The notes: a model not told the origin generated them from the sequence alone. A stretch of DNA of 64,000 nucleotides from Macrostomum lignano (GCA_002269645.1 NIVC01001596.1:59910-123909); one strand, 5' to 3'; positions 25,737-37,548 are shown, counted from the stretch's first letter. Numbers and translations are program-made.

Positions 25737-26004
25737 ATGGACAACTCGTCACCAGATGAACTGTTTGGCATGACGCCAAGAGTTGTAGTTAAGAAAACGA
25801 TCAATAATGACGAGGAAGTGTCGATGCCGTTGAGCCATCCGACGGATGGCGACAAGGCGGAGAGAGCCGGATCCGAAGGCGAGCCGAGCGAGGCCAGGGT
25901 GCAGTGGAACAGCAAGATGGAATTCCTGCTGTCAACCATTGGGTTTGCCGTCGATTTGTCCAACGTGTTCAGATTTCCAAACACGTGCTACAGCAACGGT
26001 GGAG
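25737..26004 (+). CDS. DAT: SLC6 exon 1 (N-terminus, TM1)
   Basis: ATG...[28 protein letters not shown], |gtgagg donor. Confidence 0.92.
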
Positions 26005-35000: not shown

Positions 35001-37548
35001 CTCTCTCTCTCTCTCTCTCTCTCTCTCTCTCTCTCTCTCTCTCTCTCTCTCTCTCTCTCTCTCTCTCTCTCTCTCTCTCTCTCTCTCTCTCTCTCTCTCT
35101 CTCTCTCTCTCTCTCTCTCTCTCTCTCTCTCTCTCTCTCTCTCTCTCTCTCTCTCTCTCTCTCTCAATGGAGTTTTATGAGTTTGCTCGCCACCTAAACC
35201 TGTGGGCTCCACTGATCACCCTCTCCTTTTATTATTTGACTCCAAACCCCAAAGTTGGCAACCCCAAACACCAAAACCAAAAGCCTAGCCTAGTTGTGCA
35301 CAGCTTTATATTGACGAATGAATTTGAAAAACTTGCTAGGCGCATTCTCGTTATGCAAAAGAGGAGAGAGAGATGAGAGATGAAGGCGGAGAGAGCAGAG
35401 TGCAGAGAGACGAGAGAAGTGAATAAAGGGGAGGGAGTATAGAAGAGGGAAAAGAAGAGGACTAAGGAAAGAGAGGAGTCAAAAGAGGGGAAAGAGAAGA
35501 GTACAGAGGAGAGAGGTGAGAGAACATACCAGTATAAGAGAGTAAAGATGACAGATGAGAGAGGGGAGATGAGAGAGCAGAGATGAGAGAGCAGAGACGA
35601 GAGAGAAGAGAGAAAACAGAAGAGAAGATAGAAGGTTCAAAGGATGCAAGGAACATAGGGATCGAGAGGCAGAAGTAGAGGCCAGAGTTTTTCTGACATT
35701 CTGCGCCGCACCCCAGCCAACAATATCAATAGTTTGCCTCCAATCCTAATTTTACACGAATGTAATCTATGTTATGTTTAACTCTAATAATAAAAGTTTT
35801 TGCTTGAGTTTAACTTCAGATTTTTGAATATATGCAAAATAGTTCCTAAAATTGGAATTCCCATTTCCCACTGTTCAAAATCCGCGGGTTTCAACAGCTG
35901 TTACAGCTTGTTGTATAAAAGTTATGTGTTCTGTTCTGCATCATTCTAGCTCGTAAATACAACATTTCACTACATGCATAGACTTAAAAGGGTTGACAGA
36001 GTGCTAAACTTTAGGAGCATCATTTTTCCGGCAGTCATTTCGCTGGCAGTCAAATTGCTCGGCAGTCAAATTGCCGCAGTCATATTGTCGGCAGTCATTT
36101 CGCTGGCAGTCAAATTGCCGCAGTCATATTGTCGGCAGTCATTTTGCTGGCAGTCAAATTGCCGCAGTCATATTGTCGGCAGTCAAATTGCCGCAGTCAT
36201 TTTGTCGGCAGTCAAATTGCCGCAGTCATATTGTCGGCAGTCAAATTTCCGCAGTCATTTTGTCGGCAGTCATTTTGTTGGCAGTCATTTTGTCGGCAGT
36301 CATTTTGTTGGCAGTCATTTTGTCGGCAGTCATTTTGTTGGCAGTCATTTTGTCCGCAGTCAAATTGTCGGCAGTCAAATTGTCGGCAGTCATTTTGTCC
36401 GCAGTCATTTTGTTCAGTCATTTTGTCCGCAGTCAAATTGTCGGCAGTCAAATTGTCGGCAGTCATTTTGTCCGCAGTCATTTTGTTCAGTCATTTTGTC
36501 GGCAGTCATTTTGTTGGCAGTCAAATTGTCGGCAGTCAAATTTCCGCAGTCATTTTGTCGGCAGTCATTTTGTTGGCAGTCATTTTGTCGGCAGTCATTT
36601 TGTTGGCAGTCATTTTGTCCGCAGTCAAATTGTCGGCAGTCAAATTGTCGGCAGTCATTTTGTCCGCAGTCATTTTGTTCAGTCATTTTGTCCGCAGTCA
36701 AATTGTCGGCAGTCAAATTGTCGGCAGTCATTTTGTCCGCAGTCATTTTGTTCAGTCATTTTGTCGGCAGTCATTTTGTTGGCAGTCAAATTGTCGGCAG
36801 TCAAATTGTCGGCAGTCATTTTGTCCGCAGTCATTTTGTTCAGTCATTTTGTCCGCAGTCAAATTGTCGGCAGTCAAATTGTCGGCAGTCATTTTGTCCG
36901 CAGTCATTTTGTTCAGTCATTTTGTCGGCAGTCATTTTGTTGGCAGTCAAATTGTCGGCAGTCAAATTGTCGGCAGTCATTTTGTTCAGTCATATTGTCG
37001 GCAGTCAAATTACCGCAGTCATTTTGTCGGCAGTCATTTTGTTGGCAGTCAAATTGTCGGCAGTCAAATTGTCGGCAGTCATTTTGTCCGCAGTCATTTT
37101 GTTCAGTCATATTGTCGGCAGTCAAATTACCGCAGTCATTTTGTCGGCAGTCATTTTGTTGGCAGTCAAATTGTCGGCAGTCAAATTGTCGGCAGTCATT
37201 TTGTCCGCAGTCATTTTGTTCAGTCATTTTGTCGGCAGTCAAATTGCTCGGCAGTCAAATTGTCCGCAGTCAAATTGTGGCAGTCAATTGTCGTGCACCC
37301 GGTTGGAAGCAAGTGTTGACAGATTGCGAAATAAAAATTGACTTGCATATGTGTACATACTTTGTAACATTGTAGAAAATCGCCTTGTCAATATCTCCTT
37401 CTCGTGAGCATGACGAAATTCGGGAACAAGGAAATGTAACACGATTCGGGGTAAGACCGCATTCCGGTATGATTAACATTTCGTTCGATTATTTTAACTG
37501 CTTCAACAACTCTCCCTCTTACAGCTGCAACACTGGTTGAATTTTTAA
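25737..37548 (+). CDS. DAT: SLC6 Na+/Cl- dependent monoamine transporter, DAT/NET (invertebrate DAT)-like, 643 aa
   Basis: Exons 25737-26004, 27500-27634, 28297-28582, 29023-29161, 29771-29905, 30420-30648, 31882-32135, 32205-32304, 33590-33876, 37376-37450, 37525-37548 sum to 1932 nt in frame. TM1 GFAVDL carries the amine-binding Asp with Phe (not the SERT Tyr); TM8 LGLDSSFG; C-terminus LQHWLNF*. Confidence 0.9.
26030..26250. repeat. 57-bp minisatellite, ~4 copies
   Basis: Period 57. Confidence 0.9.
26528..27287 (+). mobile_element. Decayed Tc1/IS630-like DNA transposon in SLC6 intron 1
   Basis: ~80-bp imperfect inverted repeats at 26537-26614 and 27198-27279; frameshifted internal peptides resembling the HTH DNA-binding region ([56 protein letters not shown]); no DDE domain seen. 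Confidence 0.65.
27500..27634 (+). CDS. DAT: SLC6 exon 2 (TM2)
   Basis: GAFLIPY...[10 protein letters not shown]...CPIMKG; ttttag| and |gtacgc. Confidence 0.95.
27790..28200. repeat. ~38-bp G-rich array GGGTAAGAGGGGTGGTGGGGGTGGCTGTTCAATAGAC
   Basis: Direct inspection. Confidence 0.9.
28297..28582 (+). CDS. DAT: SLC6 exon 3 (TM3, EL2)
   Basis: [12 protein letters not shown]...LPWTRC...SASEYF; tacag| and |gtgagc. Confidence 0.95.
28597..28680. repeat. (TCTG)n microsatellite
   Basis: Direct inspection. Confidence 0.95.
29023..29161 (+). CDS. DAT: SLC6 exon 4 (TM4)
   Basis: DLGPPKWDL...[12 protein letters not shown]; rare AAG acceptor (cacaag|) is the one that restores the frame; |gtgagt. Confidence 0.9.
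29284..29680. repeat. 31-bp ATGACTTCTGATG(T/C)GCAGTGTCCATGAGTAC array
   Basis: Period 31. Confidence 0.95.
29771..29905 (+). CDS. DAT: SLC6 exon 5 (TM5; absent from ORF track)
   Basis: [36 protein letters not shown]; ttgcag| and |gtaagt. Confidence 0.95.
29940..30203 (-). mobile_element. tRNA-derived SINE with MIR/CORE-like domain
   Basis: Minus strand: A-box-like CCTAGTGGTAAG, B box GGTTCGATTCC (+30135-30145), then TGTGTCCTTGAGCAAGACATTTAACTCT...CAGCTGTAAAATGGG resembling the CORE domain. The 3' boundary is approximate. Confidence 0.75.
30420..30648 (+). CDS. DAT: SLC6 exon 6 (TM6-7)
   Basis: [19 protein letters not shown]...SYN...[13 protein letters not shown]. Confidence 0.95.
30780..31670. 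repeat. ~20-bp CTGTCTCTTGGTGGGCGCCC array (same family as 23860-25010)
   Basis: Shared core CTGTCTCTTGGT.GCGCC. Confidence 0.95.
31882..32135 (+). CDS. DAT: SLC6 exon 7 (EL4, TM8-9)
   Basis: [11 protein letters not shown]...[15 protein letters not shown]. Confidence 0.95.
32205..32304 (+). CDS. DAT: SLC6 exon 8 (TM10)
   Basis: [15 protein letters not shown]...SWVYG; ttgcag| and |gtgaga. Confidence 0.93.
32475..33480. repeat. 54-bp minisatellite with 326-bp higher-order repeat
   Basis: Duplicated ORF-track peptides offset by 326 bp. Confidence 0.95.
33590..33876 (+). CDS. DAT: SLC6 exon 9 (TM11-12)
   Basis: EMLGSRP...[10 protein letters not shown]...[14 protein letters not shown]. Confidence 0.93.
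33955..34549. repeat. 61-bp G-rich array containing CCAGTGTACATTTGGGG
   Basis: Period 61; last unit interrupted by the Foldback element. Confidence 0.93.
34550..37300. mobile_element. Foldback/MULE-like non-autonomous element with tandem-repeat TIRs and 9-bp TSD
   Basis: Left end GGGTCTACGACAATTGACTGCC; right end reverse-complements to GGGTGCACGACAATTGACTGCC; GGTTGGAAG duplicated at 34541-34549 and 37301-37309; arms built of ~16-bp TTTGACTGCCGACAA units. Confidence 0.85.
34914..35165. repeat. (CT)n microsatellite inside the Foldback loop
   Basis: Perfect dinucleotide run. Confidence 0.97.
37376..37450 (+). CDS. DAT: SLC6 exon 10 (absent from ORF track)
   Basis: [25 protein letters not shown] aligns to DAT [23 protein letters not shown]; tgtag| and |gtaaga. 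Confidence 0.88.
37525..37548 (+). CDS. DAT: SLC6 terminal 24-nt exon
   Basis: ttacag|LQHWLNF TAA, matching NET LQHWLAI / DAT LRHWLKV; AATAAA at 37589. Confidence 0.88.
   Translation: MQHWLNF

Follow-up and report, generated by a model that had tools for sequence, protein, structure and literature searches.

A gene for a transporter of the SLC6 family lies at 25737–37548, on the plus strand, of a 64,000-nucleotide stretch of the Macrostomum lignano genome (GCA_002269645.1, NIVC01001596.1:59910–123909; the whole stretch is called the window below). It raises the question of what a monoamine transporter with an intact core and altered vestibule and gate residues should be taken to be: a divergent paralogue turned to another amine or another ion coupling, as a preliminary description made from the DNA sequence had proposed, or a member of a known lineage that carries many of these residues by descent. 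Our answer, to which we give a probability of roughly 0.7, is that the gene would be the orthologue, in M. lignano, of the catecholamine/dopamine transporter of platyhelminths, a canonical Na+/Cl--coupled symporter whose vestibule was probably remodelled in a flatworm ancestor. The gene itself is already public as an unnamed 'Transporter'; what is new is its assignment to the platyhelminth dopamine-transporter lineage.

The gene consists of eleven exons, which form a single open frame, and ten introns, all of the GT..AG type. The coding sequence of 1932 nucleotides is in frame throughout and ends in a TAA stop codon at 37546–37548, giving a product of 643 amino acids; translation and a check of the splice sites left the extent and the eleven in-frame exons of the preliminary description unchanged. 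The product is an exact match to GenBank entry PAA66040.1 (BOX15_Mlig001900g1) from the same M. lignano assembly (GCA_002269645.1), labelled 'hypothetical protein' in GenBank and 'Transporter' in UniRef. It covers positions 1–522 of the 524 of the Pfam SNF profile (PF00209, E-value 5.2e-187), a full-length domain with twelve transmembrane helices (TM) and the LeuT fold that places it in the SLC6, or neurotransmitter:sodium symporter, family. Among solved structures the best match is human NET (hNET, 8.5e-159), followed by human DAT (hDAT) and Drosophila DAT (dDAT), all three aligned end to end with E-values of about 1e-157 to 1e-159 and about 45% identity, and human SERT, likewise aligned end to end, scores somewhat lower. 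Aspartate 73 of the window protein aligns with hDAT D79, the mark of the monoamine subfamily, where amino-acid and GABA transporters have a glycine. What the locus holds is an intact gene for an SLC6 transporter of the monoamine type and, as had been stated, not a pseudogene: the window copy is fully open with canonical splice sites, and so is a second genomic copy described further below.

Residues are numbered here as in native hDAT, the sequence of which was taken from the 9jkh_A alignment. They were read from an alignment of hDAT, the window protein, three flatworm relatives, a second M. lignano paralogue and reference sequences. All residues previously listed as retained are present (R60, F76, D79, N82, R85, Y102, Y156, Q317, F320, S321, Y335, N353, S357, D421, S422 and D436), and the protein further keeps G75, V78, E117, D345, L418, E428 and the cysteines C180 and C189 of the second extracellular loop (EL2). 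The ligands of the first sodium site (Na1; A77, N82, S321 and N353), of the second (Na2; G75, V78, L418, D421 and S422) and of chloride (Y102, Q317, S321, N353 and S357) are identical to those of hDAT. The changes reported before are real as well (W84F, Y88N, L89T, S149N, G153A, S262M, K264V, G386N, P387S and E491Q), and they are accompanied by others, the main ones being A81S, I159V, S309K, D385V, A423S, G426A, D476E and H477E. D476 is the partner of R85 in an extracellular salt bridge, and its replacement by glutamate is conservative. Compared with hDAT, hNET and dDAT, the S1, Na1, Na2 and Cl- sites and the principal gate residues are conserved, whereas the window protein differs in the vestibule (W84F, I159V, D385V, G386N, P387S, D476E and H477E), at K264V and at Y88N/L89T.

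How unusual these states are was judged among 145–190 monoamine-type (Asp79) proteins from outside Macrostomum. Position 84 is a tryptophan in 184 of 190 and a phenylalanine in five, those of Cichlidogyrus and Schistosoma mekongi and the fragments P0128, P0154 and P0160; position 386 is a glycine in 151 of 155, with asparagine in S. mekongi only. Y88 is a tyrosine in 177 of 190, asparagine occurring only in the environmental fragment P0160, and L89 is a leucine in 172 of 190 (isoleucine in ten, valine in four, phenylalanine in two, threonine in one). K264 is a lysine in 143 of 154; OAT-like proteins of lice (Menopon, Pediculus and Polyplax), of the aphids Sipha and Cinara and of the scale insect Kerria have replaced it independently, by leucine in P0012, P0016, P0106 and P0119 and by isoleucine in P0099, P0100, P0110 and P0120. 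Glutamate 491 in TM10, which had been presented as a conserved site, is a glutamate in 120 of 145 proteins and a glutamine in 23; glutamine is the usual state of nemertean, annelid and mollusc NET/OAT-like proteins and is also found in the canonical M. lignano paralogue. P387 is a proline in 131 of 155 (hNET has alanine), S262 a serine in 129 of 153, and S149 and G153 vary freely. The label 'near-invariant' fits W84, Y88, L89, K264 and G386, about half of the sites to which it had been given, and fails for S149, G153, S262, P387 and E491.

Most of the deviations at well-conserved positions are shared with other flatworms. In a screen against 110 close relatives from outside Macrostomum, the window protein deviates at 35 of the 220 columns conserved to at least 90%, and 26 of these 35 are also altered in the flatworm relatives; the nine found in Macrostomum only are Y88N, L89T, F138M, Y155F, I159V, W184Y, S227A, K264V and L401I. 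Four of the deviating columns (W84, S227, G386 and G426) are 100% conserved among the 110 relatives. At such columns the window protein shares W84F (4/4), G386N (3/3) and G426A (4/4) with its flatworm relatives, and G109C, M371L and G433A are also common to them. The description of the gene as a divergent paralogue is right in that a canonical catecholamine-type paralogue, PAA89269.1, exists on another contig, but most of the divergence is shared with its platyhelminth clade.

These relatives came from a representative search followed by residue extraction, which yielded two proteins with Phe84: P0171, from the monogenean Cichlidogyrus casuarinus, and P0200, from S. mekongi, whose cluster includes an S. 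japonicum 'Sodium-dependent dopamine transporter'. A profile search with three flatworm sequences added only the protein of S. turkestanicum (P0343) among the matches listed, and the DATs of S. mansoni, Clonorchis and planarians lie outside those matches. When 78 SLC6 representatives were placed in a neighbour-joining tree, built with Kimura distances from 517 trimmed columns and with 100 bootstraps, the window protein fell among the Asp79 sequences, away from an outgroup of 30 Gly79 sequences, and joined the Cichlidogyrus, S. mekongi and S. turkestanicum proteins in a clade with a bootstrap value of 93/100. In this tree, SERT, the invertebrate DAT-type proteins (Asp153), deuterostome DAT/NET, arthropod OAT and lophotrochozoan OAT/NET-like proteins appear as separate clusters. 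The flatworm clade is independently supported, since columns with exclusive signatures, BLAST ranks and shared rare states point the same way: three such columns unite the four-way flatworm group and ten the window protein with Cichlidogyrus, against none with the second M. lignano paralogue or with nemerteans, and the window protein is the best non-self match of both the Cichlidogyrus and the S. turkestanicum proteins, the second paralogue ranking at about 170–200. The phylogeny proposed in the preliminary description, run by this distance method, supports membership of the clade of DAT-annotated flatworm proteins.

Two further comparisons bear on this placement. Outside M. lignano, the nearest full-length proteins, at only about 50% identity, are 'noradrenaline transporter-like' proteins of nemerteans, annelids, molluscs and insects, a set that includes the characterised octopamine transporters of Chilo suppressalis and Limulus; OATs and lophotrochozoan NET-like proteins show the highest pairwise similarity to the window protein (about 50% for nemertean, annelid and mollusc members), and the lophotrochozoan members also have a glutamine at E491. 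However, OAT-like proteins have W84, Y88, L89, G386, P387 and G426 and a tyrosine at F320, and the window protein falls outside their clade (Chilo, Limulus and lophotrochozoan NET-like), while the second M. lignano paralogue (P0180) falls inside it; the exclusion is of moderate strength, the deep branching being weakly supported.

This second Asp79 transporter of M. lignano (P0180/P0386; PAA89269.1, BOX15_Mlig025221g1) is encoded on contig NIVC01000157.1 (L005 2001–9915). It has the canonical W84, Y88, L89, K264, G386, P387 and G426 and, like the OAT/NET-like proteins, a tyrosine at F320. By its place in the lophotrochozoan OAT/NET-like clade, it is likely to be an octopamine/tyramine or noradrenaline-type transporter. 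The M. lignano set would then comprise one DAT-lineage gene (that of the window), one OAT/NET-like gene and, presumably, a SERT. Flatworm SERTs, namely a SERT-annotated Cichlidogyrus protein and its neighbour in the tree (P0170), keep W84, K264, G386, P387 and E491; the odd residues therefore mark one flatworm transporter lineage and not an acceleration throughout the phylum. A generally fast evolution of flatworm proteins was accordingly rejected as the cause of W84F, G386N and K264V, given that the second M. lignano paralogue keeps the canonical residues too. The assembly of P0170 (GCA_004794785.1) is probably that of a trematode.

The altered residues of the window protein can be sorted by how far they extend. 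W84F, G386N, G426A and S309K, along with hydrophobicity at position 262, are clade-wide, shared by the platyhelminth DATs as represented by the S. mekongi, S. japonicum, S. turkestanicum and Cichlidogyrus proteins, which are 39–49% identical to the window protein. These proteins also have in common with it serine or threonine at A81, the aspartate at 79, the 12-TM SNF architecture and glutamine at 491 (S. turkestanicum excepted), the last being typical of the phylum. S149, G153 and P387 are variable sites, and Y88N, L89T, K264V, D385V and D476E are found, among the platyhelminth DATs, in the window protein only. The window protein differs further from the schistosome DATs in its long EL2 and normal-length N-terminus, and in keeping G75, N82 and D421, where the schistosome proteins have serine, threonine and glycine. 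Three sodium-site ligands have thereby been replaced in P0200 and P0343, by G75S, N82T (Na1) and D421G (Na2); the Macrostomum and Cichlidogyrus proteins keep them, and their loss in schistosomes would not be expected of transporters with a reported dependence on Na+.

The clade-wide changes land on a site with a published role. When the human and S. mansoni transporters were compared, their pharmacological differences were traced to an allosteric domain of the extracellular vestibule, and the contacts of this 'A2' site in hDAT are W84, F155, I159, D385, P387 and D476/H477, confirmed by protection of W84C (PMC8227285). In the window protein these positions read F, F, V, V, S and E/E; their location in the vestibule is taken from the published hDAT work. 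The vestibule had been called rewired, and the residues behind this term are real, but the property is largely a known one of the flatworm DAT lineage, tied in the literature to pharmacology and not to the kind of substrate.

Function can be approached through the parasitic members of the group. CsDAT of Clonorchis sinensis, expressed in oocytes, takes up dopamine with a Km of 454 nM, loses uptake without Na+ and does not carry unrelated solutes; for SmDAT of S. mansoni, a Km of 2.0 µM is quoted (PMC12400079). The title of Larsen et al. 2011, as cited, calls SmDAT a 'catecholamine transporter' and ascribes to it a 'low affinity for psychostimulants'. By analogy, the window transporter would clear dopamine, and probably noradrenaline, at aminergic synapses. 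Conservation extends to its central substrate site, to the two sodium sites and the chloride site, and to most of the gate residues. The altered part would be the lining of the extracellular vestibule (S2/'A2'), made up of F84 in TM1b, V385-N386-S387 at the tip of EL4, E476-E477 in TM10 and V159, and most of this remodelling was probably inherited from the common ancestor of the flatworm clade. It may be expected to alter inhibitor pharmacology, towards a low affinity for psychostimulants as in SmDAT, and not the class of substrate. An altered pharmacology, one of the earlier proposals, is plausible on these grounds, but on the title just quoted it has already been described for SmDAT. The changes peculiar to Macrostomum, Y88N and L89T where TM1b ends and K264V on the cytoplasmic end of TM5, may shift the balance of outward-facing against inward-facing states.

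Several points weigh against this reading. The tree was built from distances, and the branch of the flatworm clade is long; the clade adjoins rotifer sequences at 46% support, so that its deep position is unreliable, and between invertebrate DAT-type proteins, OAT/NET-type proteins and a flatworm-specific duplicate the sister group could be any. The schistosome proteins are only 38–39% identical to the window protein. The DAT-annotated proteins of S. mekongi, S. japonicum and S. turkestanicum stand in here for SmDAT and CsDAT (GAA29481), and SmDAT is assumed to be an orthologue of the Schistosoma proteins compared. Nine of the changes at conserved sites, K264V and Y88N/L89T among them, are absent from the parasitic relatives. 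The S1 subsite differs from that of hDAT at A81S, S149N, G153A, A423S and G426A, which makes a shifted substrate preference possible.

The last of these points feeds an unlikely alternative, in which the gene is a neofunctionalised paralogue that carries another amine, or has changed its ion coupling, and the canonical paralogue handles dopamine. The presence of a canonical catecholamine-type paralogue in the same genome, the five S1 subsite differences and the nine substitutions specific to Macrostomum speak for it. However, the two schistosome proteins annotated as DAT both have A81S/T and G426A, that of S. mekongi also has A423S, the monogenean protein has N149 and A153, and trematode members of the group transport dopamine. 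With its place in the OAT/NET-like clade and its tyrosine at F320, PAA89269.1 would suit a role in octopamine or tyramine transport better. Octopamine, tyramine and histamine, which had been suggested as substrates, are not the likeliest ones for a group in which CsDAT and SmDAT take up dopamine in a Na+-dependent manner. The conservation of every Na1, Na2 and Cl- ligand speaks against the suggested change in ion coupling. A related thought, about as improbable, is that the F84/N386/A426 lineage is one of naturally vestibule-remodelled catecholamine transporters and that its Macrostomum member, which has in addition lost K264 and the tyrosine and leucine of TM1b, may differ from every characterised DAT in conformational equilibrium or in preferred amine, dividing labour with PAA89269.1.

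Chances are slimmer for a catecholamine carrier that the loss of K264 and Y88/L89, together with F84, would have made strongly outward-biased or leaky, with slow turnover and large uncoupled currents. K264A is reported, in work by Loland et al. of 2004, to be among the intracellular mutations that shift the conformational equilibrium of hDAT, and V264, N88 and T89 are absent from parasitic flatworms. The mutant W84L biases hDAT towards the outward-facing state and raises its affinity for cocaine analogues (PMC3197159). The earlier statement on mutants that shift the conformational equilibrium is thereby backed for W84. Phenylalanine, however, is a conservative substitute for tryptophan, the insect OAT-like proteins that replaced K264 by leucine or isoleucine look otherwise intact, and the other intracellular gate residues, R60, Y335, D345, E428 and D436, are present in the window protein.

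The gene is present several times over in the M. lignano genome. Near-identical copies are found in the window, in L001 (NIVC01002725.1) and in L002 (NIVC01000225.1), with five protein entries in all. Their exons are 98–100% identical and several introns 100% identical, whereas introns that bear repeats vary greatly in length; the copies are either alleles or homeologues of very recent origin. The window and L001 differ at five synonymous and six nonsynonymous sites, a count too small to inform on selection. The six replacements all lie in the N-terminal tail or in residues 523–573 (TM11 to EL6), and none touches a functional site. The ratio of nonsynonymous to synonymous rates (dN/dS) among M. 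lignano copies was dropped as a test of selection, near-identical copies giving it no power. Neither the window copy nor L001 contains frameshifts, premature stops or broken splice sites; the only lesion, in L002, is a 1-bp deletion in the CCC run of exon 7 (CTCCCGGG to CT-CCGGG; L002 12490–12742, equivalent to the window near 32068). The L002 model PAA87589.1 is truncated to 469 amino acids because this deletion shifts the frame. Either the copy has truly been inactivated or the deletion is a homopolymer error of long-read sequencing.

A 967-bp metagenomic contig (ENA ERZ23498939; P0160/L003 668–949) contains a counterpart of exon 1 in which the intron has the same place and the motif reads NVFRFPNIC. 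Across the 37 codons that can be aligned with the window, a small sample, the proportion of synonymous differences (pS) is 0.86, near saturation, and that of nonsynonymous differences (pN) is 0.13. With Phe84 and Asn88 kept while synonymous sites approach saturation, the two residues have been held through a long divergence, and their retention in P0160 would argue against both assembly error and neutral decay. Assembly error was rejected as a source of the odd residues in any case, the same residues being found in three genomic copies, in five database entries and in relatives. It is thus very improbable that the gene is a redundant copy drifting under relaxed selection after a recent M. lignano genome duplication and on its way to becoming a pseudogene, or that it is an artefact of assembly or annotation, as the near-identical copies, the deleted L002 with its 469-residue model and the six-to-five count might suggest: two copies or more have a fully open frame and canonical splice sites, the copies are too recent for that count to have power, the L002 deletion is of a kind typical of long reads, and the odd residues are older than the duplication, being common to other flatworms and to a conserved environmental relative.

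A short query covering TM1 to TM3 for proteins that share the motif returned short fragments only, 36 candidates that include P0160 and P0128 (NVFRFPYLC). P0128 (L004 808–1179, Logan DRR639838) has Phe84, and its exons 1 and 2 are fused. Together, P0128 and P0160 suggest that the Phe84 lineage has other members still to be sampled. A scan of JGI metagenomes for relatives and a search with a degenerate DNA pattern for a 12-residue peptide both found nothing.

Since the 'A2' allosteric site of the hDAT vestibule, on which the clade-wide changes lie, was itself found through the human/schistosome comparison, an orthologue in a harmless, tractable free-living flatworm could serve to model its pharmacology and assist work on anthelmintic targets. 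The value of the locus lies mainly in annotation, in natural variants at this site and in candidate residues for mutagenesis, and no new type of transporter is involved. Should the Macrostomum protein differ in equilibrium or amine after all, M. lignano, with transgenesis and RNA interference, would offer a model of how vestibule and gate residues tune the pharmacology of SLC6 transporters.

The exons, all on the plus strand, divide the protein as follows, as read from the translation and the hDAT alignment. Exon 1 (25737–26004) holds the start codon, the cytoplasmic N-terminus with the R60 equivalent and TM1, with D79, N82, phenylalanine at W84, R85, asparagine at Y88 and threonine at L89, and ends at a GT donor. 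TM2, with the equivalents of Y102 and E117, is encoded by exon 2 (27500–27634), which ends at CPIMKG. Exon 3 (28297–28582) covers TM3 (asparagine at S149, alanine at G153, and Y156) as well as the long EL2, where the conserved cysteine pair C180/C189 lies. This is followed by exon 4 (29023–29161), encoding TM4 and the start of the second intracellular loop with the sequence KGVKSMGV (serine at T261, methionine at S262 and valine at K264), and by exon 5 (29771–29905), encoding TM5 and the third extracellular loop and ending in LLDIK, where the lysine at S309 is the state of the flatworm clade. Exon 6 (30420–30648) contains the equivalents of D313, Q317, F320, S321 and F326 in TM6, of Y335 and D345, and of N353 and S357 in TM7. 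The tip of EL4 (VNSGL, with valine at D385, asparagine at G386 and serine at P387), TM8 (L418, D421, S422, serine at A423, alanine at G426, E428 and D436) and TM9 are encoded by exon 7 (31882–32135). The asparagine of the NSGL motif has its codon split as A|AC over intron 6, a junction backed by a strong GTAAGT donor. Exon 8 (32205–32304) encodes TM10, with glutamates at D476 and H477 and a glutamine at E491. Exon 9 (33590–33876) encodes TM11, the sixth extracellular loop and TM12, including residues 523, 525 and 573, the only amino acids outside the N-terminal tail that differ between copies. The C-terminal tail is encoded by exon 10 (37376–37450), and exon 11 (37525–37548) encodes LQHWLNF, followed by the TAA stop codon.

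The window is eukaryotic DNA rich in minisatellites. Minisatellite and microsatellite arrays occupy most of the longer introns of the transporter gene (26032–26252, 27774–28116, 29284–29678, 30779–31667, 32475–33477, 33956–34549, 34557–34857, 34913–35165 and 36020–37293), examples being (CT)126 at 34913–35165, 18.5 repeats of a 54-nucleotide unit in intron 8 and, spread across 1.27 kb of intron 9, a 15/73-nucleotide unit. Comparison of the three copies shows up to two-fold differences in intron length, the non-repeat introns being 100% identical. Upstream of the gene, arrays are located at 20000–20861, 22730–23172 and 23866–24999 and include (CCTCT)172, a 22-nucleotide unit and a 20-nucleotide unit repeated 57 times. 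The 20-nucleotide unit is related to the array of intron 6 (CTGTCTCTTGGTGGGCGCC-like), and a single repeat family is therefore dispersed around and inside the gene.

Two other genes flank the transporter gene within the window. The upstream neighbour, on the plus strand at about 6600–14100, has exons of the immunoglobulin superfamily (Ig_3, I-set and ig domains at 10610–11188 and 12633–13331) and is probably a cell-adhesion or receptor gene. Downstream, on the minus strand, exons at 41121–41384 and 42335–42778 encode a small GTPase of the Rab/Ras family (Ras, PF00071, E-value 8e-26). The GTPase gene is also found downstream of the L001 copy, and the duplicated block therefore reaches beyond the transporter gene.

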